Shown here piece after piece: positions 19,910 to 63,192 of a DNA stretch of 64,000 bases (the first letter of the stretch is position 1; each line of letters opens with the position of its first letter). The position numbers and the translations under genes are program-made. The stretch is from the sequence record NC_048045.1. The stretch is one strand, 5' to 3'. The notes beneath the pieces were generated by a model, which did not search any database, was not told the origin of the DNA, and saw nothing but the letters and a program-made list of their open reading frames with translations.

Positions 19910-19980
19910 GGTCTCCATCAGCAGGTGATGGAGCCCTTCTAGGCCTCTCGACCTAGCGTGTCAACACTCTCGCGCCAACA
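19910..19980 (-). promoter_or_regulatory. Phage promoter family member lacking GACGACAAC, with RBS hairpin
   Basis: TGGCG-N6-TGTTGACA-N17-TAGAAG; CTCCATC/GATGGAG stem. Confidence 0.75.
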
Positions 19981-19989
19981 AAATGTCGG

Positions 19990-20313
19990 CTAATAGGTTT
20001 CGAGTTTCGGAGCCTCTTCCAGGACCAGGGTGTACATGTCGCGGGGATCACCGCACGGGATGATGTCCACGATCACGCAGGTCCGGATGCGCTCGCTTTG
20101 GGTCAGGTAGATGACGAAGTCACCCAGGCGCGGTCCTTGGCAGTGGACCATCACGCTGATGCGCTCGATCTTCAGCGGCTTCCTGAACCAGCCGCGCTTG
20201 ACCAAGCGCGGCTGCTCGATCTTGAACGTGCTGGAGTGCATGGCGTGACCCCAGCCTTGCTTGCCGGGGCGGAAGTCGAAGGTCCGAGGACCGTTGTTAA
20301 GACGCAGGAGCAT
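19990..20313 (-). CDS. Hypothetical protein
   Basis: ORF in string. Confidence 0.65.
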   Translation of the reverse strand: MLLRLNNGPRTFDFRPGKQGWGHAMHSSTFKIEQPRLVKRGWFRKPLKIERISVMVHCQGPRLGDFVIYLTQSERIRTCVIVDIIPCGDPRDMYTLVLEEAPKLETY

Positions 20314-20527
20314 GGCGATCCTTTTCGGCTAGGACGCGGCGCTCCAGACGGCCGTGTCCGATAAAGGTGATGATGTCCTTGCCCCGGACGCGTTTGGGCA
20401 TGTAGCCGCCAAAGCGCCGCTGGAGCGGGATGCGCCGGTACTTGGGATCGAACAGCCCGACCCAGCGGCGCGCCCTGGGGTTCTCGCGCGGCAGGATCAC
20501 CGACAGGACATAGGGTGAGAAGTTCAT
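20297..20527 (-). CDS. Hypothetical basic protein (76 aa)
   Basis: Start MNFSPY overlaps upstream stop. Confidence 0.6.
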   Translation of the reverse strand: MNFSPYVLSVILPRENPRARRWVGLFDPKYRRIPLQRRFGGYMPKRVRGKDIITFIGHGRLERRVLAEKDRHAPAS

Positions 20528-20766
20528 GTCGTGAACGTCGAGAGGACGTAGGTCGCCTCGGCCCGGCCGTAGTCGTCGGGGCCGATCAGCGCCAGTTGCG
20601 ACGGCTGGTCGAGATCGACATCGCGCCAGACCACCTTGCCCTTGCGGCCGGTGATCGACGGGTCGTGCGGCAGGTCGGCGATCAGCCGCAGGGCGCCGGT
20701 GGCAATCTGGTGGGCCTCGTAGGAGCCCGGCTCGATATGGTCGGCGAGGGTGAGCTTGACGAGCAT
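20524..20766 (-). CDS. Hypothetical protein
   Basis: AAAGGAG RBS. Confidence 0.7.
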   Translation of the reverse strand: MLVKLTLADHIEPGSYEAHQIATGALRLIADLPHDPSITGRKGKVVWRDVDLDQPSQLALIGPDDYGRAEATYVLSTFTT

Positions 20767-20798
20767 CTGGGCTCCTTTCTATCCGTGAAGAGAGGTCT

Positions 20799-21290
20799 TC
20801 AGGTGGGCGCGGCCCTGGTGATACATCCGCACCGCTTGCTTCTCGGTCTTGCAGGGACCAAACCAGAGCAGGTCCCCGGCCGCCGGGCGGCGAACCCGTA
20901 TTGGCGCATGGGCTCTTCAACGTAGTCGACCCCGGCCAAAATGCTGATCACCTCGTAGGGGCTTTCGCCCGCTTCGATCTGCGCGTCGTCCACGCCGACG
21001 TAAAACGAGACATCCTTGCCGAACATCCCGCCGGTGACCCTGGCGTGCCGCCAGGACGACCAGAACCATCCGCGTCGTAGTTCCAAGCCGCCACGCCGTC
21101 CCAGGAACGCTTCCATCGGCTCACCGTCGGGCCAGGACCCGAGCACCGACGCCTGGAAGACCGAGTCAGCAGGAGACTCCGCCTTGACGAGACCGGTGGC
21201 GATCCGCTTGGCGTCGTCCTCGTCGACCGCCGTGACCTCGACCTCGGTGACGAGGGCCTGGGTGACCTTGATCAGGAAGGTTTCAGTCAC
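20799..21290 (-). CDS. Hypothetical protein; C-terminus possibly frameshifted (alternative end 20779)
   Basis: Codon bias drops after a G4 run at 20874-20877. Confidence 0.65.
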   Translation of the reverse strand: MTETFLIKVTQALVTEVEVTAVDEDDAKRIATGLVKAESPADSVFQASVLGSWPDGEPMEAFLGRRGGLELRRGWFWSSWRHARVTGGMFGKDVSFYVGVDDAQIEAGESPYEVISILAGVDYVEEPMRQYGFAARRPGTCSGLVPARPRSKRCGCITRAAPT

Positions 21291-21969
21291 GCAGGTGCGC
21301 CAATTGAAAGGCCGTGGCGCCGACCGCCGCCGCCAGTTCCGACTTGATCTGGTCGACGTCGGCCTTCAACTCCTTGAAGTAGGGCGTGTCGGCGAGCAGG
21401 TCCTGCATCTTCCACAGGCCCATATAGGCGCGCAGCACGTAGCCGGTCGGGTCATCCTCGACCAGCGGCACGACCTCGGTGGTCTTGACCTCGAACGTGC
21501 CCATCGGCCCGACCAGGAACACCACGTCGTGGGGCTCGATGATCCGCACGCCGCCCGAGGCGAGGTTCTTGACCACGCGCTCGCGGTGCTCGCAGTGGCT
21601 GACCAGGGCGATAGACGCGCTTTCGGCATGCGGCGGATTGTTGGTCACCACCACCACGCGGTCGCCCGGCTGGAGCGCCCAGCGGACCTCGGGATCGTTC
21701 AGGTGGTCATCAACCATCTTGCGGATCGTCGCCAGCGAGCGATGACCATAGCAGTCGCCGTTGACGACGTACTGGATGATCTTCCACTCCTTGTCGGTCG
21801 GCGAGGGGATTTCCTTGCCATCGCCGTCGCGGCCGTGGAAGTAGGCCACCGACTCCAGGCGCTGGATGGCCTCAATGTCGTTGTCGGTGTCGGTCTCGAT
21901 CGTGTCGAGCAGGTTGATCATCCGCACGAGACTGTAGGTGATCGGACGGGTGTAGGGGCGCTTGATCAC
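21283..21969 (-). CDS. Hypothetical protein
   Basis: ORF in string. Confidence 0.75.
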   Translation of the reverse strand: MIKRPYTRPITYSLVRMINLLDTIETDTDNDIEAIQRLESVAYFHGRDGDGKEIPSPTDKEWKIIQYVVNGDCYGHRSLATIRKMVDDHLNDPEVRWALQPGDRVVVVTNNPPHAESASIALVSHCEHRERVVKNLASGGVRIIEPHDVVFLVGPMGTFEVKTTEVVPLVEDDPTGYVLRAYMGLWKMQDLLADTPYFKELKADVDQIKSELAAAVGATAFQLAHLRD

Positions 21970-22862
21970 AGGTGCTTCTCCAGGCCCAGGTCGTCGATCA
22001 CCGCCTGGGCGATGGCTTCGAGGTTGAAGTGGCCGTCGAGGATCGCATCACGCATGTCGTCGGCGTCGACCCAGTTGGAGGCGCCCTGATAGGCGGTGTT
22101 CTCGGCGGCCTCGATCGCGCGCTTGAGCGCGTCGGCCAGGATCACCGCCGGGGTGCGCTTGACCTTGGCCTTCTTGACCTTCCAGTGGAGGTCCTGGATG
22201 CGCACGACGCGGCGGGCGCCGTCGTCGATGTCCTTGAACGCGCCGGCCTCGACCAGCCGCTCGACGGTGGCGTCGCTGAAATGCGGATTGGCGTCGTCGA
22301 CCGGGAAGGTCGTCCAGCAGTCGGTGCCCAGTTGAGTCAGGGTGCCCGACGGCGTGGCGCGCGCGGCGTGGATGGCGTGGTATTCGTCGGCGAGCATGAA
22401 CTGCTCGTAGCCGGGGCCGCTCTCCTCGCCCTTGTCGTCGATGACGCGGACGTAGCAGTTCTCGCCGTTCCACGAGTCGGAGACGTAGCACTCGACCAGG
22501 ATATAGGTCTTGCCGACGGTGAAGCGTTCGCTGCTGCCCACGTAGACCGCCTTGGCGTTCTGAGGGAAGGGCCAGCGATAGTGCTCATGGTCCGGATCGA
22601 ACTTCGCCAAGACGGCGAGGATCGAGTCCAGGCTGACATCCTCAGGCGAGAAGCGCTTGTACTTGCCGGTCTCGTCGCGGCCATGGAAGAGGTCCTGACA
22701 CTCGCGCACGATGTCGTACTCGTCGGGCCAGATCGCGCCGCCGCGATACTCGGACAGCACCTTGTCGAACTCGGCGACCGAAGCGGTGTCGTGCGCCAGA
22801 CGGAGTAGGGTCTGGAGAATCTCGGCCGGCTGGCGGGCATAGGCGTGGGGTTGGCGGACCAT
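21966..22862 (-). CDS. Hypothetical protein
   Basis: ORF in string with strong codon bias. Confidence 0.8.
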   Translation of the reverse strand: MVRQPHAYARQPAEILQTLLRLAHDTASVAEFDKVLSEYRGGAIWPDEYDIVRECQDLFHGRDETGKYKRFSPEDVSLDSILAVLAKFDPDHEHYRWPFPQNAKAVYVGSSERFTVGKTYILVECYVSDSWNGENCYVRVIDDKGEESGPGYEQFMLADEYHAIHAARATPSGTLTQLGTDCWTTFPVDDANPHFSDATVERLVEAGAFKDIDDGARRVVRIQDLHWKVKKAKVKRTPAVILADALKRAIEAAENTAYQGASNWVDADDMRDAILDGHFNLEAIAQAVIDDLGLEKHL

Positions 22863-23227
22863 CAGGCCGACACCTTGCCCAGTTGCTTTTCCAGTTCGGC
22901 GCGCAGTTCGGCGTCGGTCAGGCCCAGGCGTTCCTTCATGAACGTCAGGGCGTCGGCCGCGTTATCGAAGGAGCGGGTCTCCCGATCGGTACTGTCGCGC
23001 AGGCCCCGGATTTCGGTCACGCCCCAGAAGGTCGCCCAGAGGGCCACGACCAGGGCCGCCAGCGCCGCGAAGAACGAGCCACCGAACTGGTGCGCATCGA
23101 CGCGCTCGACGAGATCGGCTGCGGCCCAGGTCGCGGCGAGCACCGCCACGGTGCCCAGATGCAGCAGGGCGGTCTTGCGGGTGTAGGTCGGGGTCACCGC
23201 CAGGGTGAACTTGTCGCTGGTCTCCAA
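22862..23227 (-). CDS. Membrane protein (2 TM)
   Basis: TTG start after promoter leader; hydrophobic segments. Confidence 0.7.
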   Translation of the reverse strand: METSDKFTLAVTPTYTRKTALLHLGTVAVLAATWAAADLVERVDAHQFGGSFFAALAALVVALWATFWGVTEIRGLRDSTDRETRSFDNAADALTFMKERLGLTDAELRAELEKQLGKVSA

Positions 23228-23235
23228 GAGAGGTC

Positions 23236-23303
23236 TCCTCTGTCGTTGTCGTCGAGGTGCTTATAGGCGGTGGTCAACCGGCTGTCAACACTCTCACGCC
23301 AGC
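23236..23303 (-). promoter_or_regulatory. Phage promoter family member
   Basis: TGGCG-N6-TGTTGACA-N17-TATAAG-N6-GACGACAAC-GAGGAG. Confidence 0.85.
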
Positions 23304-24712
23304 TTTACGCCGACCGTGCCCGCGACCTTGGCTAGGGCCTCGCGCTGCGCCTTGATGCGCTTGTCGAAGGCGTCGAGCGAGGCCATCATGTCGCTCTCCA
23401 GCTTGTCCAGCGCCGCCCATTGCTCGACGACCGCCTTGGCGGCCTTGTCCTGGGCTTCGTTGCGCTCGGGACCATAGACCCGCTCACGCAGTTCAGCGAC
23501 CCAGGCGCGGGGCAAGCCCAGTTCCTTGGAGACCTTCTCGTCGGTCATGTCGCCGCCATAGCACTGGCGGTTGGTGTCGTAGTGGATATCCAGAGCTTCG
23601 AGGATGCGGCGGTTTTCGGCTGGCGTCGCCGCGCGCGGCGGCTCGGCGGTCTGGACCGGGGGCGAGGTCTTGGTGGCGGTTGCGGGCATGGCGATCTCCG
23701 GAATAGGGGTTTCGATATGGGCTTCGATGGTGGTCGGATTGTTCTTCTTGGCCAGCCGCGTCTTGGCGGCGGCCTTTTGGCGCTCGGAGCGCTCTTCCTT
23801 GGTCATGGCGGCCCAGTAGGCGCGCGGACCCGCACCGCGCTTCTCGCGCTGCTCAGCGATCTTGGCCTGCTTCTTGGCCTTGCGGGTGGCGTGGCCCTTC
23901 TTGGCGAGTTCCGACTTCTGCTCGGGCGTCAGCGACTCGTGATGGGCGCGCAGATGGGCGCCGTCGAAAAGCTTGCGCAGGTCGACCTTGCCGTCGGCTT
24001 CCTGTTCCTTGCGCACGATGGCGTTGGCCTCCTCGATAATGGCGTTGAGGAACTTGTCGGACACGTAGTGCTCGATCTCCTCGGCCAGCACGTCGGGCTC
24101 GGTCTTCAACTGCTTGAGCATCCGGCGCACGGACTCCAGGAGGGGAGCCGGCGGGGCGTCGACACCGCACTCGCGGAAGAACTTGCCCGCGTACACCGTC
24201 AGGATGCCCTTGATCCGGTTCTCGCGGGGATAGCCCCCGGTGGTTTTGCGGATGGCGCCGCGCACGATCTTGTCGGCCGTGTCGGGATCGATCTCCGCCA
24301 CATTGGCCAGCATCTTGCCCACGGCCTCATCTTCGAGGACGAAATCGCCAGCCTTGCCCGGCTCGACGAGTTCCAGAGGCTTGATCGCGTTGGCCACCAT
24401 CTGGATCGCCGTGTCGATGGCGATGTCGTCGCGTTCGGCGGCGGGGGCGGAGTGTACCTTGGCGTTGCCGTGGCAGGAGGGGCAGACGTCCTTGTTGCGA
24501 TTGGCACCGATCGCCCAGCCGCGCTTGCGGAATATCTTGGAGGCCAGTTCCGCCGGGATGTGCGGGCTGCGCGTCGTCACCGGGACGGCGTCATCGCGCT
24601 CGCATTTGCGGCAGACGGCCACGACATGGTTCTGGCGTTTGTTGGGGTCGGACACCAAGGGTCGCATCTCGACCCGGAACGACTCCCGCGTGGCGAGTTT
24701 GGTCGTGCTCAT
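23294..24712 (-). CDS. Multidomain hypothetical protein (Cys motifs, basic repeats, HTH-like C-terminus)
   Basis: CRKC..CPSCH; LTPEQKSELAKKG and MTKEERSERQK repeats; KVSKELGLPRAWVAELRE. Confidence 0.8.
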   Translation of the reverse strand: MSTTKLATRESFRVEMRPLVSDPNKRQNHVVAVCRKCERDDAVPVTTRSPHIPAELASKIFRKRGWAIGANRNKDVCPSCHGNAKVHSAPAAERDDIAIDTAIQMVANAIKPLELVEPGKAGDFVLEDEAVGKMLANVAEIDPDTADKIVRGAIRKTTGGYPRENRIKGILTVYAGKFFRECGVDAPPAPLLESVRRMLKQLKTEPDVLAEEIEHYVSDKFLNAIIEEANAIVRKEQEADGKVDLRKLFDGAHLRAHHESLTPEQKSELAKKGHATRKAKKQAKIAEQREKRGAGPRAYWAAMTKEERSERQKAAAKTRLAKKNNPTTIEAHIETPIPEIAMPATATKTSPPVQTAEPPRAATPAENRRILEALDIHYDTNRQCYGGDMTDEKVSKELGLPRAWVAELRERVYGPERNEAQDKAAKAVVEQWAALDKLESDMMASLDAFDKRIKAQREALAKVAGTVGVKLA

Positions 24713-25041: not shown

Positions 25042-25047
25042 CGCGGT

Positions 25048-25113
25048 CTCCAGGTTGTCGTCAATCCGACATCTAGGAGGCTTTTCCGAACCTGTCAACA
25101 CAATCACGCCAGC
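25048..25113 (-). promoter_or_regulatory. Phage promoter family member
   Basis: TGGCG-N6-TGTTGACA-N17-TAGATG-N7-GACGACAAC-GGAG. Confidence 0.85.
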
Positions 25114-26725: not shown

Positions 26726-26731
26726 GGTGGG

Positions 26732-26783
26732 CCTCCTTCGTTGTCGTCGGAGCCTACCTAGACTGGCGCGAGTGTGTTGTCAA
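26732..26783 (-). promoter_or_regulatory. Phage promoter family member with inverted TGGCG site in the spacer
   Basis: TTGACA-ACACACTCGCGCCAGTC-TAGGTA-N6-GACGACAAC-GGAGG. Confidence 0.85.
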
Positions 26784-26923: not shown

Positions 26924-26925
26924 GA

Positions 26926-28327: not shown

Positions 28328-28331
28328 GGAC

Positions 28332-28399
28332 TTCCCCTTCTGCTGCTGCCGGGCGGTTCTAGCTAAGCTTCACTATGGTGTCAACGTACTAACGCCAGA
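28332..28399 (-). promoter_or_regulatory. Phage promoter (no GACGACAAC) upstream of ACP
   Basis: TGGCG-N6-CGTTGACA-N17-TAGAAC. Confidence 0.7.
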
Positions 28400-29481: not shown

Positions 29482-29489
29482 GGGGTCTC

Positions 29490-29882
29490 CTAGTAGAGGA
29501 CGCTCCAAGACTTCTGGGTCTTGGCGTAAGCGGATGGGACGATGTAGCCGCGATCGTTCAGATCGGCGAGCAGGGTTTCGGTGGTCGGCAGGAACGCCTC
29601 TTCGCTCGCGGGCTCCTGGCCCGGCTCGCAGTGGTTCCGAGCCCACCAGTAGAGGCGGTGGTTCAGGCGCAGCGTCGTGCGCTCGAACGCCCGGCGCGGA
29701 TTGATCTCGTTGGCCAGGATGTGCATGAGCCAGCCCGCCAGCGTGTAGCGCGAGGAGTTGCCGACCGGGTCCCGGTAGAACCCGGCCTGCTTCAGGCGCT
29801 CGAACTCGGCCTGGAACTCTGGCAGGAAGCGCACGAGGCGTCCGAACGGCTCATGGAAGACGACGATCTGCCGATCATTCAT
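29490..29882 (-). CDS. Hypothetical protein
   Basis: ORF in string. Confidence 0.7.
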   Translation of the reverse strand: MNDRQIVVFHEPFGRLVRFLPEFQAEFERLKQAGFYRDPVGNSSRYTLAGWLMHILANEINPRRAFERTTLRLNHRLYWWARNHCEPGQEPASEEAFLPTTETLLADLNDRGYIVPSAYAKTQKSWSVLY

Positions 29883-30240
29883 CGGCTTGATAGCCCAGAT
29901 GCGGCCTCAAGTTGACGAGATCGTCTTCTTCCAGACGGATCGCGGTCAGCTTCGAGCACCGGGCGCTGTCGGCCATCTTGGTGTAGCGCTTGGCGAGTTT
30001 CCAGTAGGTTTGGGCGTGATCCCACCAGCGGTAGCTCGCGCTCTGGATTTCCTCGGCCTCCTCGCGGGTCACCGGCCGGCGCTGGAAGAGCCACCACGGC
30101 GAGACCGTCACCCGCTCCTGGCGCATGATCTTGGCGATCGTCTCCTCGCGGATGGCGTCGCCCTGGGCCTCGAAGTCCTCGGCGCCTTTGGTGGCGGCCT
30201 CGATCAGGACGAGACGGTCGATTTCGGCGCTCATGGTCAC
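29875..30240 (-). CDS. Hypothetical protein
   Basis: ORF in string. Confidence 0.7.
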   Translation of the reverse strand: MTMSAEIDRLVLIEAATKGAEDFEAQGDAIREETIAKIMRQERVTVSPWWLFQRRPVTREEAEEIQSASYRWWDHAQTYWKLAKRYTKMADSARCSKLTAIRLEEDDLVNLRPHLGYQADE

Positions 30241-30506
30241 TTCAGCTTCTCCCCGACATAGACCTCCAGGAAACGCGCCTGCGTGTCCGGGTCCTGGAAC
30301 ATCCAGATGGCGTACTTGGTGCGCGGGAACGGCTGACGGAAGAACTCGGCACCGCCCAGCGTCTGCTTGGCGATGGGCGGGGTCGGCGCGGTCAACGGCG
30401 TCTTGACCACGAACGGGTAGGCCGTCAGGTGCTTGATCACCGCCAGCGAGCAGTCGCGCTCACGCGAGGTCTTCTCCGGCAGGTCGCGGGTCCAGGTCGT
30501 CGTCAA
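30237..30506 (-). CDS. Hypothetical protein
   Basis: TTG start overlapping upstream TGA. Confidence 0.65.
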   Translation of the reverse strand: MTTTWTRDLPEKTSRERDCSLAVIKHLTAYPFVVKTPLTAPTPPIAKQTLGGAEFFRQPFPRTKYAIWMFQDPDTQARFLEVYVGEKLK

Positions 30507-30658
30507 AAGGGCTTCTCCGAAGCGCGGGCGATGATCGCCACCAAGAGGATGGAAAAGAGAGCGGCCGTGATCATCGGCGGCTGGCGGTGGTAGCCGTCGA
30601 CGAAGCCTTGGATCACACCGACCAGCATGGCGGCGCCGTAAGCGGACCAGAACTTCAA
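30503..30658 (-). CDS. Small membrane protein (51 aa)
   Basis: TTG start; KFWSAYGAAMLVGVIQGFVDG..ITAALFSILLVAIIA; 4-nt overlaps on both sides. Confidence 0.55.
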   Translation of the reverse strand: MKFWSAYGAAMLVGVIQGFVDGYHRQPPMITAALFSILLVAIIARASEKPF

Positions 30659-31227: not shown

Positions 31228-31229
31228 TG

Positions 31230-31296
31230 GAGCCTTTCGTGTCGTCACCCGCGACACTAGCTGGTCGCGGGTGAAGCTGTCAACACATCACGCCAG
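31230..31296 (-). promoter_or_regulatory. Phage promoter family member with 10-bp inverted repeat around the -10
   Basis: TGGCG-N5-TGTTGACA-N18-TAGTGT; CACCCGCGAC/GTCGCGGGTG; GACGACAC. Confidence 0.7.
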
Positions 31297-32738: not shown

Positions 32739-32806
32739 GCCTCCTTGGTTGTCGTCGACGATCCCTATAGACCTGCCTTGTCAGGCTGTCAACACTCGAC
32801 AGCCAA
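32739..32806 (-). promoter_or_regulatory. Phage promoter family member
   Basis: TGGCT-N6-TGTTGACA-N17-TATAGG-N7-GACGACAAC-GGAGG. Confidence 0.85.
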
Positions 32807-35659: not shown

Positions 35660-35906
35660 AGGTGATCCTGTAGGGCAGACCGCCGACGCAAATCTTGCCC
35701 CGACGCCCGCTGGCGGTGGTGAAGGAAAAGCCCTGGCGGCCTTTGGTCCCGGCGCAAGCGAACCAGCGCCGGTGGAAGCTCACGATCGTCGAGCCCGTGT
35801 CGCGCTCGACGAGCCGCCGGGCATGGTTGCCCTCCCAGCCCAGGGCATAGAGCCCGATCGCCGTGAAGATCAGGCCCAGGGCGAAAGTCGCGGCGATCGA
35901 CCTCAC
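35649..35906 (-). CDS. Membrane-anchored or secreted small protein
   Basis: N-terminal hydrophobic helix; two Cys. Confidence 0.65.
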   Translation of the reverse strand: MRSIAATFALGLIFTAIGLYALGWEGNHARRLVERDTGSTIVSFHRRWFACAGTKGRQGFSFTTASGRRGKICVGGLPYRITYDR

Positions 35907-36283
35907 GCGGCGGCCAGCCCGCCGATGACGTCGGTGACGATCCGGCGCTTTTCAGCCGACATGCCGGCCAGGGCCAGGATCGTGCCCGCGCCGATCTCGG
36001 CGACGGCGTTGTCCACGGCGGCGCGGCCGTCGGTCATGTAGGCGGGATCATCGACCGGCGGGTAGAAGCTCTCGATCGGCTGCTTCAGGAAGCGCGCGGC
36101 CTCGTAGAGCTTCGAGGACGAGATGCGGTTGGAGCCGCGCTCGTACTTCTGCACCTGCTGGAAGGTCAGGCCCAGAGCAGCGGCGAGGTCGCCCTGGGAG
36201 GCACCTTGCTCCTTGCGGGCTTGACGCAGGCGCTGGCCGACGAACAGGTCGACGGGGTGAGGGGTCTTGTCTTCGTCAGCCAT
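35903..36283 (-). CDS. XRE-family HTH transcriptional regulator (alphaproteobacterial type)
   Basis: HPVDLFVGQRLRQAR..SQGDLAAALGLTFQQVQKYERGSNRISSSKL; start MADEDK. Confidence 0.93.
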   Translation of the reverse strand: MADEDKTPHPVDLFVGQRLRQARKEQGASQGDLAAALGLTFQQVQKYERGSNRISSSKLYEAARFLKQPIESFYPPVDDPAYMTDGRAAVDNAVAEIGAGTILALAGMSAEKRRIVTDVIGGLAAA

Positions 36284-37564: not shown

Positions 37565-37631
37565 CTCCTCTATGTCGTCGTCCCGACCCTCTTAGGTGGA
37601 GTTTCCACTTCTGTCAACACACAACCGCCAG
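37565..37631 (-). promoter_or_regulatory. Phage promoter family member
   Basis: TGGCG-N6-TGTTGACA-N17-TAAGAG, then GACGACAT and GAGGAG. Confidence 0.8.
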
Positions 37632-41017: not shown

Positions 41018-41065
41018 CCCCTCGAAATTCGCCGGCACCCTAGAGACGCGCCGATGTGTTGACAA
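41018..41065 (-). promoter_or_regulatory. Leftward promoter of the divergent region (gcrA operon)
   Basis: TTGTCA-N17-TAGGGT; GAGGGG RBS. Confidence 0.55.
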
Positions 41066-41079
41066 GCGCAAAATAGCTC

Positions 41080-41145
41080 TGGCTGGCGAGTGTTGACAAG
41101 GAGGCGGTGGTCCCTTAGAAGGGCGGCGACGACAACGAAAGGAGG
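41080..41145 (+). promoter_or_regulatory. Phage promoter family member (first rightward)
   Basis: TGGCT-N6-TGTTGACA-N17-TAGAAG-N6-GACGACAAC-GGAGG. Confidence 0.85.
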
Positions 41146-42855: not shown

Positions 42856-43047
42856 GTGCTGACCAACGAGGAGATCACCTTCGCGGGCCTGATCCGGGCC
42901 ATGGAGGACGCCCGCCGCGAAGCCCGCGCGGTGGGCGATCTCCTCAAGTCCGCCGAGATCGACGGCTGGTTCAAGGAGCACGCGCCGATCATCCGGGCGA
43001 TCCGCGACAAGGCCGAAGCCGACGAATTCGACAATCCGTTGGCGTGA
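42856..43047 (+). CDS. Hypothetical protein
   Basis: ORF in string. Confidence 0.65.
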   Translation: MLTNEEITFAGLIRAMEDARREARAVGDLLKSAEIDGWFKEHAPIIRAIRDKAEADEFDNPLA

Positions 43048-43105
43048 GAGTGTTGACAGCCTCGCCGCGCCCGGTTAAAAGCCTCCTCGACGACAACGCA
43101 AGGAG
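43038..43105 (+). promoter_or_regulatory. Phage promoter family member
   Basis: TGGCG-N6-TGTTGACA-N17-TAAAAG-N7-GACGACAAC-AGGAG. Confidence 0.85.
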
Positions 43106-43111
43106 CCTGTC

Positions 43112-44275
43112 TTGACCGATTTCCCGATCATCCGCGCCGCCATCGAAGGCCGCCGCGCCGCCGCGTTCGACACGATGCTGGCCAATGCCGACGCCTTCGC
43201 CGCCGAGGGCGTGCTGATCAAGGCCGAGTTCGAGGACATCAAGGGCGTCTTCACCCGCTGCATCGACGCGGCCTGGGAGGTCGTGCGCAAACGCTACTTC
43301 TTCATCGACCACGCCCTGCGCACCAAGGAAGTCGAGGACCTCTTCTGGAGCTTCTCGATCCCCTACCCGCACGTCCTGCCGGGCTACCTGAAGAAGACCC
43401 TGGCGGCCAAGAACATCCCGTCCAACGTCCGCGAGGACCTCGTGGCCCTGTTCAACGAGGGCATCGCCCTCAACGACAAGCTGGTGGCGCTCAAGCCCCT
43501 GATCGGCAAGCGCGCGCCCAAGAAGACCAAGGTCGAGATCGAGCGCGAGGGCAAGGAGCGCACCTGCCAAATCTGCGGTCGCGGCATCCTGGCCGAGGGC
43601 GGCACCATCGCCCACCACGGCTATACCCGTCCCGGCTACGGCTGGCAGACCGCCTCCTGCTCAGGCGCCCGCGAGGTCCCGTTCGAGATCAGCCGCGACG
43701 AACTGCGCAAGGAGATCGAGGCCCTCAAGGCGTGGCGCGTGCGCAAACTCGCCGAGCGCGCCCGGATCGAGGCCGAGGAAGTCAAGCTGGTGCTGAAGTA
43801 TCAGGTCTCCGAGCAGGACCCGCGCCGCGCGCAGGGCTTCAAGCTGACCGTCGATCGCCAGATCGAAGTCACCCGCGACACCTTCGAGGCCCTGAAGGTC
43901 TCCACGCCCGAGGCCTTCTCGGGCAAGTACAACCCCCGCAAGGAGGGCAAGTACACCTACGAGGCCCTGACCTTCGATGGTCTCAAGACCCAAGCCATCG
44001 GCATGGTCGACATCGAGATCGGCCGCCTGGACACTGACATCCTCCGCCAGCAGGCCCGCTATGACGGCTGGACCCAGAAGGCGATCTTTGGCGCCGGCCG
44101 CTATTGGTTCATCGGCGAGACGGTCCGCGTCCCCGGCGGCGACACCGGCAAGATCAAGGGCTTCTACCAGCACGTCCCGCCGCAGCCCGGCGACATCGCC
44201 GGCGGCCTCTACCTGGAGCAGGAAGCCGGCGGCCACAAGTCCTGGAACGTGGCCGAACTGGAAGCGGTGGGCTGA
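43112..44275 (+). CDS. Hypothetical protein with Zn-binding-like motif
   Basis: TCQICGR..IAHHGYTRPGYGWQTASCSG. Confidence 0.8.
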   Translation: MTDFPIIRAAIEGRRAAAFDTMLANADAFAAEGVLIKAEFEDIKGVFTRCIDAAWEVVRKRYFFIDHALRTKEVEDLFWSFSIPYPHVLPGYLKKTLAAKNIPSNVREDLVALFNEGIALNDKLVALKPLIGKRAPKKTKVEIEREGKERTCQICGRGILAEGGTIAHHGYTRPGYGWQTASCSGAREVPFEISRDELRKEIEALKAWRVRKLAERARIEAEEVKLVLKYQVSEQDPRRAQGFKLTVDRQIEVTRDTFEALKVSTPEAFSGKYNPRKEGKYTYEALTFDGLKTQAIGMVDIEIGRLDTDILRQQARYDGWTQKAIFGAGRYWFIGETVRVPGGDTGKIKGFYQHVPPQPGDIAGGLYLEQEAGGHKSWNVAELEAVG

Positions 44276-46135: not shown

Positions 46136-46212
46136 GCTGGCGTTAGAGTGTTGACAGTCGTCGGGGCCTCCTCTATAGACACGCTCGACGACAACGAGGA
46201 GGCCCCGATGAC
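46136..46212 (+). promoter_or_regulatory. Phage promoter whose 17-nt spacer is antisense to the downstream RBS and start codon
   Basis: TGGCG-N6-TGTTGACA-GTCGTCGGGGCCTCCTC-TATAGA-N7-GACGACAAC-GAGGAGGCCCCGATGAC. Confidence 0.9.
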
Positions 46213-49741: not shown

Positions 49742-49965
49742 TCGATCACGTCTACCGCCGCGATCCGCGCGGCAAGGACTACGGCGTCCAGCGGATGGAC
49801 CTGGGCGAGGCCCTGGCGGTGGTCGCCGCCGAGAAGCAGGACTTTCTCCTGCGGCTCGTCGAGGTCCTGCACGAGAACAATCTCCTGCGCGACGCAGACG
49901 TCCTGGAATTGCTCGGCAAGGGCTGGGGCCTGGAGGCCTACGACGTCCTGTACGAAGACGATTGA
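49738..49965 (+). CDS. Hypothetical protein
   Basis: GTG start MIDHVY. Confidence 0.65.
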   Translation: MIDHVYRRDPRGKDYGVQRMDLGEALAVVAAEKQDFLLRLVEVLHENNLLRDADVLELLGKGWGLEAYDVLYEDD

Positions 49966-50014
49966 CAACACTCTCGCGCCAGCATAGAGGTGTCTCCGAC
50001 GACAACGAAGGAGG
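49962..50014 (+). promoter_or_regulatory. Phage promoter with inverted TGGCG site in the spacer
   Basis: TTGACA-ACACTCTCGCGCCAGCA-TAGAGG-N7-GACGACAAC-GGAGG. Confidence 0.85.
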
Positions 50015-51433: not shown

Positions 51434-51509
51434 GCTGGCGTTCTTGTGTTGACAGCGACCCTCATGCGGGCCTAGAACGTCATCGACGACAACAAAGGAG
51501 CCCCGCATG
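51434..51509 (+). promoter_or_regulatory. Phage promoter family member; spacer pairs with the start codon region
   Basis: TGGCG-N6-TGTTGACA-N18-TAGAAC-N6-GACGACAAC; CATGCGGG/CCCGCATG. Confidence 0.85.
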
Positions 51510-55944: not shown

Positions 55945-55946
55945 CC

Positions 55947-58331: not shown

Positions 58332-58338
58332 AAAGTGT

Positions 58339-58398
58339 TTGACAACACTCTCACGCCAACATAGAACCCTCCTCGACGACAACGAGGAGGGCCATATG
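58339..58398 (+). promoter_or_regulatory. Phage promoter with inverted TGGCG site and 9-bp RBS hairpin
   Basis: TTGACA-ACACTCTCACGCCAACA-TAGAAC-CCTCCTC-GACGACAAC-GAGGAGGG. Confidence 0.9.
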
Positions 58399-59057: not shown

Positions 59058-59434
59058 TGAAGCCGCTCGACGAACGCATCCGCGAAGCTATCGCCACTCC
59101 TCGTCCGGCCTGGATCGAGAAGAAGGGCGACCGCTTCCACGTCATCACCAAGGGCGTGCTGTTCCCCAACACGCGCAACGCCCTCTCCAAGTCCTGGAGC
59201 CGCCGCGCCGGCGCCCTCGCCTGCATCCGCCAGGATTACCTCACCCTGCTGGAGGGCGACTGCCCGCTGCCGGAGGTGACCCAGGCCCAGCGCGACGCCT
59301 ACCAGTTCCAGGGGGCCGAGCGCCGCGAAGCCGTCGAGGCCCTGAGCCGCGAACTGGGCATCCACCAGGACGAAATCCGCCGCGCCCTGCGCAACCTCGA
59401 AGGGCGTGGCCTGATCCGTTTCGAGGCGCGCTGA
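59057..59434 (+). CDS. Protein with C-terminal winged helix
   Basis: VEALSRELGIHQDEIRRALRNLEGRGLIRF; start MKPLDE. Confidence 0.7.
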   Translation: MKPLDERIREAIATPRPAWIEKKGDRFHVITKGVLFPNTRNALSKSWSRRAGALACIRQDYLTLLEGDCPLPEVTQAQRDAYQFQGAERREAVEALSRELGIHQDEIRRALRNLEGRGLIRFEAR

Positions 59435-59739
59435 TGCAAATCCTGACCTTCGCCGAGTTCATCGCCATGCCCGACGGCGTCCTCTACCAGGAGGTCACCG
59501 AGTACGGCTCACCCGTCGCGGGACTGGCGATCCGCCACTCCGTCCTCTATGACGGCGACCGCCCGTTCGACTTCATCTACGAAGAGGTCCTCGCCCGGAC
59601 CGCCGACGGTGAGATGGACGCCCCGCTGATCCTAGAAGGGCCGGGCACGGCGCGCTGGGGCCTGTTCGACTACGACCTTCGCTACATCGTCTACGAGGAG
59701 GCCGATCGCAAGGCCCTGGCCGCGAAGGTCCTCGGCTGA
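59434..59739 (+). CDS. Hypothetical acidic protein
   Basis: Start MQILTF; TGATG coupling. Confidence 0.75.
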   Translation: MQILTFAEFIAMPDGVLYQEVTEYGSPVAGLAIRHSVLYDGDRPFDFIYEEVLARTADGEMDAPLILEGPGTARWGLFDYDLRYIVYEEADRKALAAKVLG

Positions 59740-59744
59740 AGCAG

Positions 59745-59812
59745 CTTGGCGTTTGTGTGTTGACAGGGCAAGTCCGGTTCTGTAGACCTCTGCTCGACGA
59801 CAACGAGGAGGC
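59745..59812 (+). promoter_or_regulatory. Phage promoter family member
   Basis: TGGCG-N6-TGTTGACA-N17-TAGACC-N7-GACGACAAC-GAGGAGG. Confidence 0.85.
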
Positions 59813-59816
59813 CCCC

Positions 59817-60023
59817 ATGCCGCATCTGAGCAAGCAGTCCTACAGCTTCGGCTACACCAGCGACGCCCTGGCGGCGGCCGGCGAGTTCGAAGCCCTGACC
59901 ACTGAGTTCTATCGCTACGAGACCCGCTACCTCTACGACGCGTCTCGCGCGATCGTCGGCGTCGAGGTCCGCGTCATGGACGAGGACGGCTTCTTCGTCG
60001 GCTACGTCGCGGGCGAGGTCTAG
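59817..60023 (+). CDS. Hypothetical protein
   Basis: Start MPHLSK. Confidence 0.7.
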   Translation: MPHLSKQSYSFGYTSDALAAAGEFEALTTEFYRYETRYLYDASRAIVGVEVRVMDEDGFFVGYVAGEV

Positions 60024-60026
60024 CCC

Positions 60027-60422
60027 ATGCAGAACCACACCATCGATCCGCGCATCGGCGTCCTCAACTCGGGCGTCTACTACGCTTTCGTCGACGGCTA
60101 TCACAAGCCCGAGACGCGCGGCACGCTCGAAGAAGTCGAGATCGCCCTGGGCGTTCGCAAGCCCAAGCCCGCGCCGGCTCCCCTGGTGGAAGTCCAGGGC
60201 CGGGGCGGTCGCGTCTCGGTGCAGTTCGGCACCATCAACGGCAAGCCCCTGACTCTGACGATCAGCGAGGCCGACAGCGTCTGCGCCGACGTCGAGTGCG
60301 GGCGCCACGGCTGCTCGCTGGCGCTGCTGGACGACTTCGGCACGATCGGCGAGGACGGTCCCCGCGTCTCCCAGAAGACCATCGACAAGATGATCGACTG
60401 GGCGCTGACGAAGGGGTGGTAG
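60027..60422 (+). CDS. Hypothetical protein
   Basis: ORF in string. Confidence 0.7.
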   Translation: MQNHTIDPRIGVLNSGVYYAFVDGYHKPETRGTLEEVEIALGVRKPKPAPAPLVEVQGRGGRVSVQFGTINGKPLTLTISEADSVCADVECGRHGCSLALLDDFGTIGEDGPRVSQKTIDKMIDWALTKGW

Positions 60423-60632
60423 ATGAGCACCACGCGCCTCACCGCCGAGGTCATGGAGGCCATGAAGAGCACCAACGACCCGTCGCTCCAGGAGCGCCGC
60501 GTTGGCGCCGCCATGGCCGAATACGCCGGCGATCCTGACACCTTCGATCTCGAAGGCCTGAGCCCGATGGCTCGTCGGGTCGTCCATGAAATCACGCTGG
60601 ACCTGCGGGCGCGCCTGCGCCTGTCTGCATGA
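60423..60632 (+). CDS. Hypothetical protein
   Basis: ORF in string. Confidence 0.65.
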   Translation: MSTTRLTAEVMEAMKSTNDPSLQERRVGAAMAEYAGDPDTFDLEGLSPMARRVVHEITLDLRARLRLSA

Positions 60633-60658
60633 AATTTTAATCCGGAGAGGGCCTTAAG

Positions 60659-62692
60659 TTGCTGAATTTCCAACCGTTTAAGACGGCCGTGGCGGCGCAG
60701 TTCGCCAAGATGTCCAAGGGCCAACTCTACCGCGTCGAGGTCGACAAGGACCTCCTGTGGCAAACCTATCTCGCCGCCTTCCCGCCGGGCACGGACCCGA
60801 TGTTCCGCGCGCGCACCGAGCACAACTGCTCGTGCTGCCGCGCCTTCGTGCGCCAGGGCGGCGACGTCGTGGCCATCGTCGACAACAAGATCGTCACCCT
60901 GTGGGACATCACCATTCCGGGCGAGCCGGCCTACCAGCAGGTCGCCGACAGCCTCGCGGGCCTGATCCGCTCGCGGCCGATCGCCGACGTTTTCCTGCAC
61001 GACCAGAAGTCGATCGGCACCGACCGCAGCGTCGAGTCGATGCTGGGCGGCGACGTGACCTGGAACCACTTCTACTGCGACGTGCCCGAGCGCTTCGTCA
61101 AGAAGCGCGCCGACATCCCCACGGCGCTGCACGAGCCGCGCATGGCGGCCGAGACGCTGCTGCGCGCGGTCACCGAAATCAGCCGCGAGGCGGTCGAGAC
61201 CGTGCTCGAACTGGTCGCCCAGAAGTCGGTCTACCGGATCGAGGAGCACAAGGCGACGGTCGAGGCCTTCCGGGCGATGCAGAACAGCTTCGCCGGCAAG
61301 TCGGGCCTGGACGCGACCCTGCACGCCTGGACCACGGCCACCAAGGGCGAGGTCTGGGGTTCGGTGATCGGCATCAAGAACACCGTCATCGGCTCGCTGC
61401 TGCTCGACCTGTCGGGCGACATGGAGATCGAGGACGCGGTCAAGAAGTACGAGACCAAGGTCGCGCCGCAGAACTACAAGCGCACCTCGACGATCGCCAC
61501 CAAGCGCCAGATCGAGGCCGCCAAGAAGACGCTGGAAGACCTGGGCCTGACCTCGGCCCTGGAGCGCCGCTATGCCGTCCTGACGGACGTGTCGATTAAC
61601 GACGTCCTGTTCGCTGATCGCTCGGCCAAGGCGGCGCTGAACGCGGACGTGTTCTCGGAGATGGCGGCCGAGGTGGGCGAGAAGACCAAGTCGTTCGACA
61701 AGGTCGAGGAGGTCCCGATCGACCGCTTCCTGAGCGACATCCTGCCCAAGGTCACCTCGATCGAGGCCCTGGTCGAGAACCGTCTGGCGGGCAACTTCGT
61801 CAGCCTGATCGCGCCCAAGAACCCGACGGCCGGCAACCTCTTCAAGTGGGGCAACAACTTCTCCTGGTCCTACGCGGGCGAGGTTGCCGACTCCATCAAG
61901 CAGCGCGTCAAAGCGGCGGGCGGCAACGTCTCGGGCGACCTCTGCTGCCGTCTGGGCTGGTACAACTACGACGACCTCGACTTCCACATGTTCGAGCCGG
62001 GCGGTGGTCACATCAACTTCCGCAACAAGCGCTCGGGCGCCACTGGCGGCCAACTGGACGTCGACATGAACGCTGGGCGCGGCACCACGCGCGCGCCGGT
62101 CGAGAACATCTTCTATGGCGATCGCCGCCGGATGAAGGAGGGCGTCTACGAACTGAAGGTCCACCAGTTCGACAACCGCGATCAGCCGCGTGATCCGGGC
62201 TTCGAGGTCGAGATCGACTACCTGGGCGCGGTGACCAAGTTCAGCTACGCCAAGGCTTTGCGCCTGGGCGAATACGTCACGATCGCCAAGTTCAAGTACA
62301 CCCACGCTGGTGGCGTGGAGTTCATCTCGTCTCTGCCGTCGTCCTCGGCCAGCAAGGACGTCTGGGGCGTGAAGACCGAGACCTTCCGCAAGGTCAACGT
62401 CGTCATGCTGTCGCCCAATTTCTGGGACGGCGAGCCGGGCGTGGGCAACAAGCACTTCTTCTTCATGCTGGAGGGCGGCATCAACGAGGACGGCGCGCGC
62501 GGCTTCTACAACGAGTTCCTCAAGGACTCGCTGAGCCCGCACCGCCGCGTCTTCGAGATGCTGGGCTCCAAGCTGAAGCCGGCGCCGGCCGCCGAGCAAC
62601 TCTCGGGCCTGGGCTTCTCGTCGTCCAAGCCTGACACCCTGACCGTCAAGGTCTCGGGGGCTTTCACCCGCGTTCTCAAGATCAAGTTCTAG
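60659..62692 (+). CDS. Large protein with HNCSCC motif and YfaP/DUF2135/TerD-like DLDxH domain
   Basis: TEHNCSCCRAF; LGWYNYDDLDFH..GGQLDVDMNAG..PVENIFY. Confidence 0.8.
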   Translation: MLNFQPFKTAVAAQFAKMSKGQLYRVEVDKDLLWQTYLAAFPPGTDPMFRARTEHNCSCCRAFVRQGGDVVAIVDNKIVTLWDITIPGEPAYQQVADSLAGLIRSRPIADVFLHDQKSIGTDRSVESMLGGDVTWNHFYCDVPERFVKKRADIPTALHEPRMAAETLLRAVTEISREAVETVLELVAQKSVYRIEEHKATVEAFRAMQNSFAGKSGLDATLHAWTTATKGEVWGSVIGIKNTVIGSLLLDLSGDMEIEDAVKKYETKVAPQNYKRTSTIATKRQIEAAKKTLEDLGLTSALERRYAVLTDVSINDVLFADRSAKAALNADVFSEMAAEVGEKTKSFDKVEEVPIDRFLSDILPKVTSIEALVENRLAGNFVSLIAPKNPTAGNLFKWGNNFSWSYAGEVADSIKQRVKAAGGNVSGDLCCRLGWYNYDDLDFHMFEPGGGHINFRNKRSGATGGQLDVDMNAGRGTTRAPVENIFYGDRRRMKEGVYELKVHQFDNRDQPRDPGFEVEIDYLGAVTKFSYAKALRLGEYVTIAKFKYTHAGGVEFISSLPSSSASKDVWGVKTETFRKVNVVMLSPNFWDGEPGVGNKHFFFMLEGGINEDGARGFYNEFLKDSLSPHRRVFEMLGSKLKPAPAAEQLSGLGFSSSKPDTLTVKVSGAFTRVLKIKF

Positions 62693-62704
62693 GAAAGGAA
62701 GACC

Positions 62705-63121
62705 ATGGAAAACATCTTCGAAGTCGCCTCGCGCGAGAAGTACCGCTACGAATCCGCTAAGGGCCTCATCACCACCGAGGACCTGTGGGACCTGCCGCTG
62801 ACCAGCGACACGGGCAAGGCCAACCTGAACGACATCGCCGTCGGCCTGTTCAAGCAGGTCAAGGACCTGGACGACATCTCGTTCGTCAAGCCCAAGACGC
62901 TCGACAAGACCGTCGCCCCGCGCCTGGAGATCGTCAAGGCGGTGATCGCCTACCGCCAGGACGAGAACCGCAAGAAGCTGGAAGCCAGCACCAAGCGCGA
63001 GACCGCCCGCATCCTGCAAGAAGCCATCAGCGCCAAGCGCTCCGAGAAGATCGCCGGCACCCCGCTGGAAGAACTCGAAGCGCAACTGGCTGCGCTGAAG
63101 GCCGAGGGCGTCGAAGCCTAA
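62705..63121 (+). CDS. Hypothetical helical protein, probable partner of the upstream gene
   Basis: IFEVASREKYRYESAKGLITTEDLWDLPL; AGGAAAGG RBS. Confidence 0.8.
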   Translation: MENIFEVASREKYRYESAKGLITTEDLWDLPLTSDTGKANLNDIAVGLFKQVKDLDDISFVKPKTLDKTVAPRLEIVKAVIAYRQDENRKKLEASTKRETARILQEAISAKRSEKIAGTPLEELEAQLAALKAEGVEA

Positions 63122-63126
63122 TCGGC

Positions 63127-63192
63127 TGTTGACAACACTCTAACGCCAACATAGAAGGGCCTCCGACGACAACGCCGGAGGCCCTTTTCATG
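63127..63192 (+). promoter_or_regulatory. Phage promoter with inverted TGGCG site and 11-bp RBS hairpin
   Basis: TGTTGACA-ACACTCTAACGCCAACA-TAGAAG-GGCCTCC-GACGACAAC-GCCGGAGGCCCTTTT. Confidence 0.9.
63152..63192 (+). repeat. 41-nt exact repeat, copy 2
   Basis: Identical to the reverse complement of 11310-11350. Confidence 0.9.

Follow-up and report, generated by a model that had tools for sequence, protein, structure and literature searches.

The operators of the phage P1 C1 repressor and the operator and stoperators of mycobacteriophage L5 gp71 are asymmetric sites of 13-17 bp that recur at many places in a large phage genome. Overlap with promoter hexamers is common among them, and the L5 site contains the complement of TTGACA. 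Like these sites, the element described here, which we call the module, is asymmetric, repeated and placed over promoter hexamers, in this case those of Caulobacter phage CcrBL10. The window is the whole stretch of 64,000 nucleotides that was analysed (positions 124001-188000 of record NC_048045.1). Full-text literature searches returned no account of the module, and the 2012 genome paper of phiCbK mentions promoters once.

The module and its copies in CcrBL10

The pattern TGGCK-N6-TGTTGWCA had 15 exact matches in the window and none in any of 100 dinucleotide-preserving shuffles. With a copy of N5 spacing (31278-31295) and a copy with one mismatch (28379-28397), pattern matching gave 13 direct and 4 inverted promoters. 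These are the numbers that a sequence-only reading of the window had given, and its -35 hexamers for the inverted copies were also recovered (26778-26783 on the minus strand, 49962, 58339 and 63129). The direct copy at 11368-11386 lies outside the range of positions given in that reading. The copies are as follows.

11368-11386, minus strand: direct module (TGGCT variant) plus -35; -10 at 11345-11350; leader box at 11329-11337; heads gp253; orthologous and identical in phiCbK and BL57.
19959-19977, minus strand: direct module plus -35; -10 at 19936-19941; heads gp236.
23283-23301, minus strand: direct module plus -35; -10 at 23260-23265; box at 23245-23253; heads gp230.
25093-25111, minus strand: direct module plus -35; -10 at 25070-25075; heads gp228, a winged-helix protein.
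26764-26783, minus strand: inverted module filling the spacer; -35 at 26778-26783; -10 at 26755-26760; heads gp224; same class in Rogue.
28379-28397, minus strand: direct module with one mismatch (ACGTTGACA); -10 at 28356-28361; heads gp218.
31278-31295, minus strand: direct module with N5 spacing; -10 at 31254-31259; upstream of gp211.
32787-32805, minus strand: direct module (TGGCT variant); -10 at 32764-32769; heads gp208; N6 identical in three phages.
37612-37630, minus strand: direct module; -10 at 37589-37594; heads the gp197-gp198-gp199 operon.
41080-41098, plus strand: direct module at the divergence point of two gene arms; -10 at 41116-41121; heads gp191.
43040-43058, plus strand: direct module; -10 at 43076-43081; box at 43089-43097; heads gp184.
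46138-46156, plus strand: direct module; -10 at 46174-46179; heads gp179.
49962-49981, plus strand: inverted module in the spacer; -10 at 49985-49990; heads gp172; inverted in CcrBL10, Rogue, phiCbK, Karma and BL57.
51436-51454, plus strand: direct module with an 18-bp spacer; -10 at 51473-51478; heads gp168.
58339-58358, plus strand: inverted module; -10 at 58362-58367; heads the gp152-gp149 operon (with winged-helix gp150); phiCbK and BL57 have a direct module at the orthologous promoter.
59747-59765, plus strand: direct module; -10 at 59783-59788; heads gp148.
63129-63148, plus strand: inverted module; -10 at 63152-63157; heads gp143; inverted in every lineage examined.

The whole CcrBL10 genome has about 26 copies (~21 direct and ~5 inverted), all at promoters. 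In each of the 17 promoters of the window, the gene strand reads TTGACA, followed after 17-18 bp by a TAnnnn -10, mostly TAGAAG; these are the hexamers and spacing of housekeeping sigma-70/sigma-73 promoters. The -10 consensus of Caulobacter sigma-73 is GCTANAWC, and the TAGAAG-type -10 agrees with this consensus. A script placed an SD and a start codon coinciding with an annotated CDS start behind 16 of the 17; the N5 copy (31278) was paired with gp211 by position only. On the reverse strand, the module at 41080-41098 also reads TTGTCA-N18-TATTTT, pointing at gp192, and the leader of the gp143 promoter contains a hairpin plus T-run. Almost all strong sigma-73-like promoters of the early-gene arms, in CcrBL10 and in its relatives, carry the module on their -35.

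The fuller consensus of the module is G-Y-TGGCK-N5-G-TGTTG-W-CA. Its central W is constrained: it is A in direct and T in inverted copies, always the base with which the transcribed strand reads TTGACA. In the inverted copies N6 is CGAGTG, CGAGAG, TGAGAG or TTAGAG; all but the first of these are also the most frequent N6 words among direct copies, and the sequence-only reading had noticed that they match between orientations. Sequence logos show no dyad symmetry within the non-palindromic module, which rules out a lambda-type palindromic operator. The inverted copies are far more uniform among themselves than the direct copies, and this uniformity could reflect recent copying and not shared function.

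In promoter coordinates, the module spans -48 to -33 in direct promoters and -31 to -16, within the spacer, in inverted ones, where its outer arm occupies -20 to -16. The direct site is centred near -40.5, the position of a class-II activator, and the inverted site near -23.5, a repressor position, in line with the geometry proposed earlier. The operon behind the module at 37612-37630 includes gp199 (35903-36283), the orthologue of phiCbK TgrL. In phiCbK, TgrL is an early gene that peaks at or before 15 min and then declines, like ~41% of genes (PMC10688885). We count the direct module of the TgrL operon in favour of early timing of the module promoters.

Conservation of the module and switches of orientation

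We compared orthologous promoters of CcrBL10, phiCbK and BL57. In direct promoters a conserved block extends from -48 to -30 with about 88-100% identity and a sharp edge at -48. Identity is 0.96-1.00 at TGGCK, 0.68-0.96 in N6 and 0.89-1.00 at GTGTTGACA; outside the module it drops to 0.43 in the DNA upstream of -52 and to 0.60 in the spacer. The inverted class has 0.92 in the spacer and 0.33 in upstream DNA. Conservation therefore moves with the module, which fits a protein-binding site and not an RNA-polymerase contact. The GTG upstream of the -35 is invariant in direct promoters and absent from inverted ones, so it is part of the module and not of polymerase recognition. Each orthologous promoter retains its own N6 variant across the phages, as would be expected of tuned operator affinities.

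These footprints also bear on whether the module has a reader at all. Duplication and gene conversion might have spread a promoter cassette that does nothing more than supply the core promoter; the cassette is repeated ~26 times with a shared leader, orientation flips resemble cassette swaps, and the inverted copies are nearly identical to one another. We regard this explanation as very improbable, however, since the sharp conservation edge travels with the module while adjoining intergenic bases fall to 33-60%, and since homogenisation would have erased the promoter-specific N6 variants that persist across lineages. The identical 19-mers of Brevundimonas phages, which can hardly be aligned elsewhere in their DNA, also speak against it.

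Between the lineages of CcrBL10, phiCbK and BL57, three orthologous promoters have changed orientation, with -35, -10 and leader aligned in place. About six orthologous groups have any inverted member, and three of these are mixed. A switch that leaves the core promoter unmoved is more easily explained if both orientations yield similar output. The sequence-only reading had proposed one factor that activates from upstream and represses or remodels from the spacer, giving two expression classes from one site. Its single site holds as a discrete asymmetric unit independent of RNA-polymerase geometry, given the conservation boundary, the subfamily-wide conservation and a triple array, described below, that lies away from any -35; its two fixed classes are weakened by the three switches.

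Dual output of this kind, with the factor contacting sigma region 4 or alpha from upstream and setting up two temporal classes, is a reading that we hold to be doubtful, though several points speak for it. The two positions equal the textbook positions of activators and repressors, and opposite effects of one bound protein have precedents in lambda cI at OR2 and phi29 p4. Orientation can be stably kept, since all lineages examined have the gp172 and gp143 groups inverted, and class is identical within genera (CcrBL10 = Rogue, phiCbK = Karma). But with three of ~6 groups mixed, one gene would belong to different classes in close relatives. Having consensus sequences already (TTGACA, 17 bp, TAGAAG), the core promoters need little activation, and early genes must fire before any phage protein exists.

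Distribution and candidate readers

The module was found in phiCbK, Karma, Rogue and BL57, and in Brevundimonas phage Bajun, which has identical 19-mers and a single promoter with arms on both sides of the -35. Among 50,697 records, a 31-base probe gave multi-copy matches in 26 Caulobacter and 8 Brevundimonas Dolichocephalovirinae records; elsewhere it gave only five single short partial matches (in two Pseudomonas phages and one Streptomyces phage). By these matches the module is clade-specific and conserved over a phage subfamily that infects two host genera. An unrelated viral contig carries a triple tandem array upstream of a separate promoter, away from any -35. The 19-mer also occurs in two Brevundimonas chromosomes. 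An exact copy lies upstream of a DarT toxin operon in a Brevundimonas vesicularis chromosome, and another in front of a small shared gene of a Brevundimonas MAG. Copies in Brevundimonas chromosomes and in other contigs lie 11-48 bp upstream of a -35 without overlap, and look more like an upstream activating site.

Copies in host chromosomes raise the question of whether a Caulobacteraceae protein, or an accessory surface of RNA polymerase, reads the module as an enhancer that makes early promoters very strong, with inverted copies tolerated as by-products of cassette recombination. Early promoters must function with host proteins only, the module sits on nearly every strong sigma-73-like phage promoter, and the same 19-mer is shared by phages of two host genera of one family and the two chromosomes. 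Such a host-side enhancer seems unlikely to us, as the inverted copies are the most strictly conserved (0.92 across lineages) and hence not neutral, and the G+C-rich module differs in this from alpha-CTD UP elements. In Colossus, a phage of the same host, the module is shorter and diverged, which suggests that the partner evolves with the phage. The strict consensus, a very strict pattern, was absent from the Caulobacter genomes of the species-representative collection.

The sequence-only reading had named XRE, GcrA and wHTH proteins as candidate readers. As for the XRE protein TgrL, module promoters did not fit its published matrix of ChIP-seq position weights (PMC10688885, S2 Table): over 95-bp windows at the promoters, best scores averaged 5.06 bits, against 4.37 +/- 2.56 for random windows and a possible maximum of 18.4, and a TgrL/RtrA/CdxA regulon was rejected. 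Two winged-helix candidates searched by tblastn, gp150 and gp119, were absent from module-carrying Brevundimonas phages. The GANTC (YGAKTCK) site of GcrA was largely missing, only 7 of 63 promoters having a GANTC between -57 and the start codon, and GcrA/CcrM control was rejected.

A cofactor tethered to sigma, such as the phage GcrA homologue, could still reach the module on either side of the -35 through a small DNA-binding domain on a flexible linker. Host GcrA binds sigma domain 2, and its long linker lets sites at ~-20 and +2 to +30 be read (PMC4647560); the inverted outer arm falls at -20 to -16, and the homologue is encoded at the divergence point of the early arms. We think this improbable, given the scarcity of GANTC, a majority (direct) position of -48 to -38 that is beyond the known GcrA range, and a tblastn match to the CcrBL10 homologue that was weak and confined to 1 of 8 Brevundimonas phages.

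Other promoter types were also rejected. A full TTAA-N7-TTAA CtrA box was found within 60 bp at none of the 17 promoters; the known phiCbK CtrA sites are in terminal repeats. For a sigma-54 promoter (TGGCAC-N5-TTGC), the sole TTGA/TTGC is 2 bp too distant from GG, and most copies have no GC at -12. A UP element bound by alpha-CTD does not suit a G+C-rich module (TGGCG, GAGAG) that is equally conserved when inverted inside the spacer. Pfam gave HTH_3, winged-helix and GcrA hits among nine annotated DNA-binding candidates, two of which had no hit; no AraC-family two-HTH protein was among the nine. gp313 matched PHROG 4 'transcriptional repressor', and no PDB relative of it was found.

A candidate operator and its known counterparts

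The explanation we favour, with a probability of roughly 0.4, is that the module is the operator of one sequence-specific factor on the -35 of host-sigma-73-type early promoters in CcrBL10 and other Dolichocephalovirinae. The sequence comparisons establish the module itself, its edges, its conservation, its two placements and its evolutionary flips; binding of a protein to the module, the phage origin of this protein and the sign of regulation are what we infer. The inner arm TGTTG shares bases with the -35 in either orientation, so the factor would compete with or abut sigma region 4. Both orientations would then have the same kind of output, most likely an occupancy-dependent shut-off or damping of early promoters as the factor accumulates. 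The N6 word and outer-arm variants of each promoter may determine which promoters are shut off first. Being asymmetric, the site suggests a reader that binds as a monomer with a long footprint or as two head-to-tail subunits. Changes of orientation would arise by exchange of promoter cassettes among the many genomic copies.

Overlap with the -35 is compatible with activation, as with PhoB, MarA and lambda cI at PRM, and the direct site lies exactly at the class-II activator position, which counts against shut-off. Counting against the operator reading, the repressor site would stand on 26 promoters of a phage regarded as virulent, and carriers of such phages reportedly have no superinfection immunity (PMC12195562). 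The copies in Brevundimonas chromosomes and other contigs, set apart from the -35, also count against it. A more far-reaching version, quite unlikely in our view, has a global regulator encoded by all Dolichocephalovirinae that switches the early programme and possibly holds it down in the reported episomal carrier state, with host-resident elements having copied the operator to sense infection.

Work on the Caulobacter cell cycle has phiCbK as its standard phage, with roughly 140 early genes to time. A 20-bp element on ~25 promoters, subfamily-wide, is a concrete handle on early-gene control and makes it testable. The natural orientation swaps are ready-made experiments, with one core promoter and the site either upstream of the -35 or inside the spacer. 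A phage-encoded partner would be a candidate master switch for early shut-off; were the partner a host protein, phages would be exploiting an unrecognised Caulobacteraceae regulator. The site may also serve to detect infection, as copies beside the DarT defence operon and in further mobile elements hint.

Among known systems, T4, T5 and T7 early promoters likewise use unmodified host polymerase, are conserved well beyond the hexamers and are repeated many times per genome; however, their extensions are A/T-rich, UP-like tracts fixed upstream and are not known to occur inverted inside the spacer. Lambda cI at OR/OL and phi29 p4 resemble the module in that one protein sits at ~-42 of one promoter and over the -35/spacer of another, with activation and repression. 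The lambda sites, in contrast, are pseudo-palindromes of 17 bp that stand in threes and bind dimers, whereas the module is non-palindromic and single. Lambda PL reads CTGGCG-G-TGTTGACA, close to the module minus five bases, and this resemblance is probably coincidental. The marboxes of MarA/SoxS/Rob, too, are asymmetric sites of ~20 bp, whose two recognition elements are separated by about one turn of the helix; marbox orientation depends on position relative to the -35, which one marbox class overlaps. Marboxes are not known to lie in the spacer, the second position of the module, and have an unrelated consensus, and the nine CcrBL10 candidates contain no AraC-type two-HTH protein.

The P1 C1 and L5 gp71 sites are matched by the ~26 single, asymmetric, promoter-overlapping copies in CcrBL10, and by occasional two-armed versions, as in Bajun. 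Those sites belong to temperate phages with a known immunity repressor, whereas carriers of module-bearing phages are reportedly without immunity; L5 stoperators have a single orientation and work inside transcription units, whereas the module copies in CcrBL10 are all fused to a -35.

Layout of the module promoters

The window matches record positions 124001-188000 of Caulobacter phage CcrBL10 (NC_048045.1) at 100% identity, and a record coordinate minus 124000 gives the window coordinate. CcrBL10 belongs to the Dolichocephalovirinae and is a siphophage of the phiCbK type. From a divergence point near 41070, small genes, most of them unannotated, extend in two long arms, the left arm on the minus strand and the right arm on the plus strand. 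The exact module pattern, TGGCK-N6-TGTTGWCA, matched 15 times in the window and not once in 100 shuffles. When the N5 copy and one copy with a single mismatch were counted in, there were 13 direct and 4 inverted module promoters, the same numbers as in the sequence-only reading. All 17 had TTGACA on the gene strand, a spacer of 17 or 18 bp and a -10 of the TAGAAG type, and in most of them a box, GACGACAAC, was located 5 to 8 nt past the -10. In 16 of the 17, a GGAGG Shine-Dalgarno sequence and start codon coincided with an annotated CDS start; the N5 copy (31278) was assigned to gp211 by position alone.

In direct copies the module spans about -50 to -30, and in inverted copies its reverse complement runs from the -35 across the spacer as far as -14. 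The claim that one and the same module lies upstream of the -35 in the one class and in the spacer in the other was confirmed. The central W of the module is always the base that gives TTGACA on the transcribed strand, so that both orientations satisfy the -35 hexamer and the module together.

The whole CcrBL10 genome, counted on sequence assembled from five pieces, contained roughly 21 copies in direct and 5 in inverted orientation; one is located at 52 kb and the others at 115-202 kb. Nearly every strong sigma-73-like promoter candidate of the genome was a module promoter. An E. coli-type promoter scan was uninformative, because it requires T at position 6 of the -10 and misses module promoters. 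A sigma-54 promoter was ruled out by the wrong GG-to-TTG spacing and an UP element by composition. The Rfam search of the window gave no match.

At the divergence point (window 41040-41100), the reverse strand of a direct module reads TTGTCA-N18-TATTTT and points to gp192. A further TGTTGACA with a degenerate outer arm is located at 41057. Divergent promoters that overlap in this region may serve both early arms.

The box starting 5 to 8 nt after the -10 would correspond to roughly the first nine bases of the mRNA and was seen in module leaders (for instance window 11310-11350, 63152-63192, 43082-43114 and 58368-58398). It is preceded by 6 or 7 bases (often CCTCCTC or GGCCTCC) that can pair with the Shine-Dalgarno region following it, and the leader stem averaged 3.9 compared with 1.5 in shuffles. 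Two leader copies have an added T-run, and the orthologous spot of phiCbK is annotated as a terminator. Read-through RNA could hide the Shine-Dalgarno sequence or terminate at the leader, RNA started at the promoter having no 5' arm. The inverted gp134/gp137 promoter, just past the window (CcrBL10 record 190540-190640; phiCbK 185967-186060), has a long leader with an extra hairpin between box and Shine-Dalgarno sequence, whose arms GTCCGAAA and TTTCGGAC are kept in both phages.

Conservation and orientation of the module

Orthologous promoters were compared among CcrBL10, phiCbK and BL57, three phages with about 72-80% DNA identity between their genes. The identity of direct promoters was 0.96-1.00 in TGGCK, 0.68-0.96 in the N6 and 0.89-1.00 in GTGTTGACA; upstream of -52 it dropped sharply, to 0.43 on average, and in the spacer it was 0.60. 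Inverted promoters displayed the reverse pattern (spacer 0.92, upstream 0.33), which indicates that conservation moves with the module. GTG directly upstream of the -35 was invariant in direct promoters and missing from inverted ones; it is therefore part of the module and not of polymerase recognition, and a polymerase-read extended -35 was ruled out. Inverted copies were also ruled out as antisense promoters, since the opposite strand has no -10. We conclude that the module is a discrete, asymmetric element under selection at two positions, each adjoining the -35.

Each orthologous promoter kept its own N6 and outer-arm variant across CcrBL10, phiCbK and BL57. Such persistent promoter-specific variants argue for tuned sites and against simple homogenisation. 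Cassette ancestry as the whole explanation of the shared module is highly improbable in our estimate. The logo of direct copies (n = 52) showed tolerance of TGGCT and of varied N6 words, and that of inverted copies (n = 11) was almost invariant.

Both orientation classes were also present in the Caulobacter phages phiCbK, Karma, Rogue and BL57. In phiCbK (NC_019405), the -35 hexamers of inverted promoters are located at 169599, 183481 and 185967, ahead of genes at 169656, 183543 and 186060; its direct promoters number roughly 20, among them those at 162686, 165820, 171115, 178464, 188438 and 189807. We clustered the first gene behind each module promoter to define orthologous promoter groups. 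The gp172-type and gp143-type groups were inverted in all lineages, and three groups were of mixed orientation.

Orthologous promoter groups of mixed orientation
gp152 group: inverted in CcrBL10 and Rogue; direct in phiCbK and BL57
gp140/gp137 group: direct, inverted, direct
Antirestriction gene group: direct in phiCbK; inverted in BL57

In alignments of the mixed groups, the -35, -10, leader and gene stayed in register, and the change was confined to the spacer and the DNA upstream of the -35, which traded roles. Inside genera the orientation class was constant (CcrBL10 as Rogue, phiCbK as Karma). Module orientation is evolutionarily labile.

We infer that one factor reads the module in both positions. 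The inner arm has bases in common with the -35 in both orientations, and a putative bound factor would compete with sigma region 4, so that early promoters would be shut down or damped. Because of this overlap in both orientations and the swaps of orientation at the same gene, we rank first, tentatively (probability roughly 0.4), a common output of both orientations, most simply this competition with sigma region 4. According to the sequence-only reading, the factor activates from upstream and represses or remodels from the spacer, giving two expression classes. Class-II activation and repression are classically exerted from these module positions, and at two promoters the orientation never changes; with the same gene found behind either orientation in the mixed groups, we regard such a dual output as the less likely of the two.

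Distribution of the module

Among 50,697 phage records searched with a 31-base probe, multi-copy matches were confined to Dolichocephalovirinae, with 26 Caulobacter and 8 Brevundimonas records. The remainder gave only five single short partial matches, three of them in records of two Pseudomonas phages and two in records of one Streptomyces phage. In the Brevundimonas phage Bajun, promoters of this layout contain identical 19-mers, and there are outer-arm variants as well. Colossus shares its host with CcrBL10; its upstream element is related, but diverged and shorter. A module diverged on the same host and identical in another genus leans towards a phage-encoded partner. That a host enhancer protein reads the module is accordingly an unlikely alternative.

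In Bajun (L044 19544-19590 and 30800-30845), one promoter has the module upstream of its -35 and, shifted by one base from the register, an inverted N6 arm (CACTCTCG) on the downstream side. This two-armed site is a palindromic version of the module. In a paralogue of the promoter the right arm is weaker.

A strict scan of viral contigs recovered, besides Rogue, Karma and CcrBL10, one unrelated contig of 60% G+C (L015). Its minus strand carries three tandem copies, 34-36 bp apart (1358-1464), and downstream of them follow a separate TTGACG-N17-TATATA promoter and a gene of 86 residues. In the part of L015 examined, the sole clear protein link to CcrBL10 was a holin-like ORF of 36% identity. 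A strict scan with one genome for each bacterial species yielded just 7 matches, and two of the 7 in Brevundimonas is far above chance. Three of them (two Brevundimonas, one G+C-rich MAG) had the same layout, with another -35 located 32-48 bp after the module.

Exact module copies in bacterial sequences
L042 (Brevundimonas vesicularis ADH2-360 chromosome), 3264-3282
L041 (Brevundimonas MAG), 3951-3969
L039 (further bacterial copy), 3698-3716

The operon behind the L042 module comprises an ORF of 158 residues and, after it, a gene for a DarT ADP-ribosyltransferase (Pfam E = 9e-60). The gene downstream of the module in L041 is 51% identical to its L015 counterpart; these genes have no relative in CcrBL10 and no Pfam or PHROG family. 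The few copies outside the clade show a module able to act away from a -35, which suits a protein-binding site.

Candidate factors, timing and known systems

By Pfam, XRE-type HTH proteins of CcrBL10 are gp199 (TgrL), gp272 and gp313, winged-helix proteins are gp228, gp150 and gp119, and there is one GcrA homologue; no AraC-type protein was found among the annotated DNA-binding candidates. The sequence-only reading had named XRE, GcrA and winged-helix proteins as possible readers. TgrL was rejected, as its published ChIP matrix scored module promoters no better than random windows, and so was a GcrA/CcrM site, with GANTC in only 7 of 63 promoters; a cofactor tethered to sigma (the GcrA homologue, for instance) is more doubtful still than a host enhancer. 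CtrA boxes were absent from module promoters. In tblastn searches gp150 and gp119 were not found in Brevundimonas phages, and a related-locus search returned gp150 from CcrBL10 and Rogue only. gp313, gp272 and TgrL occurred in every module-bearing phage, those of Brevundimonas among them; with three XRE proteins in every carrier, the phyletic pattern singles out no candidate. Proteins common to CcrBL10 and unrelated module-bearing contigs comprised only a holin-like protein and terminase.

The 264-residue HTH_3 protein gp313 (record 79811-80605; 29811-30605 of the CcrBL10 piece L003) is encoded at the lysis/replication boundary and was conserved in 47 of 47 Caulobacter and Brevundimonas Dolichocephalovirinae records found. 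It matched a PHROG of transcriptional repressors across most of its length, which is unexpected for phages treated as virulent, and had no PDB match.

CcrBL10 orthologue of tgrL
gp199, window 35903-36283, third gene behind the direct promoter at 37612-37630

The published tgrL primer maps to the phiCbK gene at 154860-155237, which encodes an HTH_3 protein. This gene belongs to the approximately 41% of phiCbK genes whose expression is highest by 15 min and falls afterwards (PMC10688885), so that at least this direct-class promoter is early and later shut down. Contigs assembled from four phiCbK RNA-seq runs covered 23-45 kb of phage sequence each and ended at repeated modules (compared with Karma, L016 1500-7499); these ends arise from assembly at the repeat and do not mark transcript boundaries.

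No description of the module was found in the searchable literature, and we rate it as a promoter-fused operator in a pivoting arrangement. By the features tested, it probably falls outside the P1 C1, L5 gp71, marbox and lambda cI families. Closest in architecture are the dispersed asymmetric operators of P1 C1 and L5 gp71, and it resembles marboxes and lambda cI in orientation logic.
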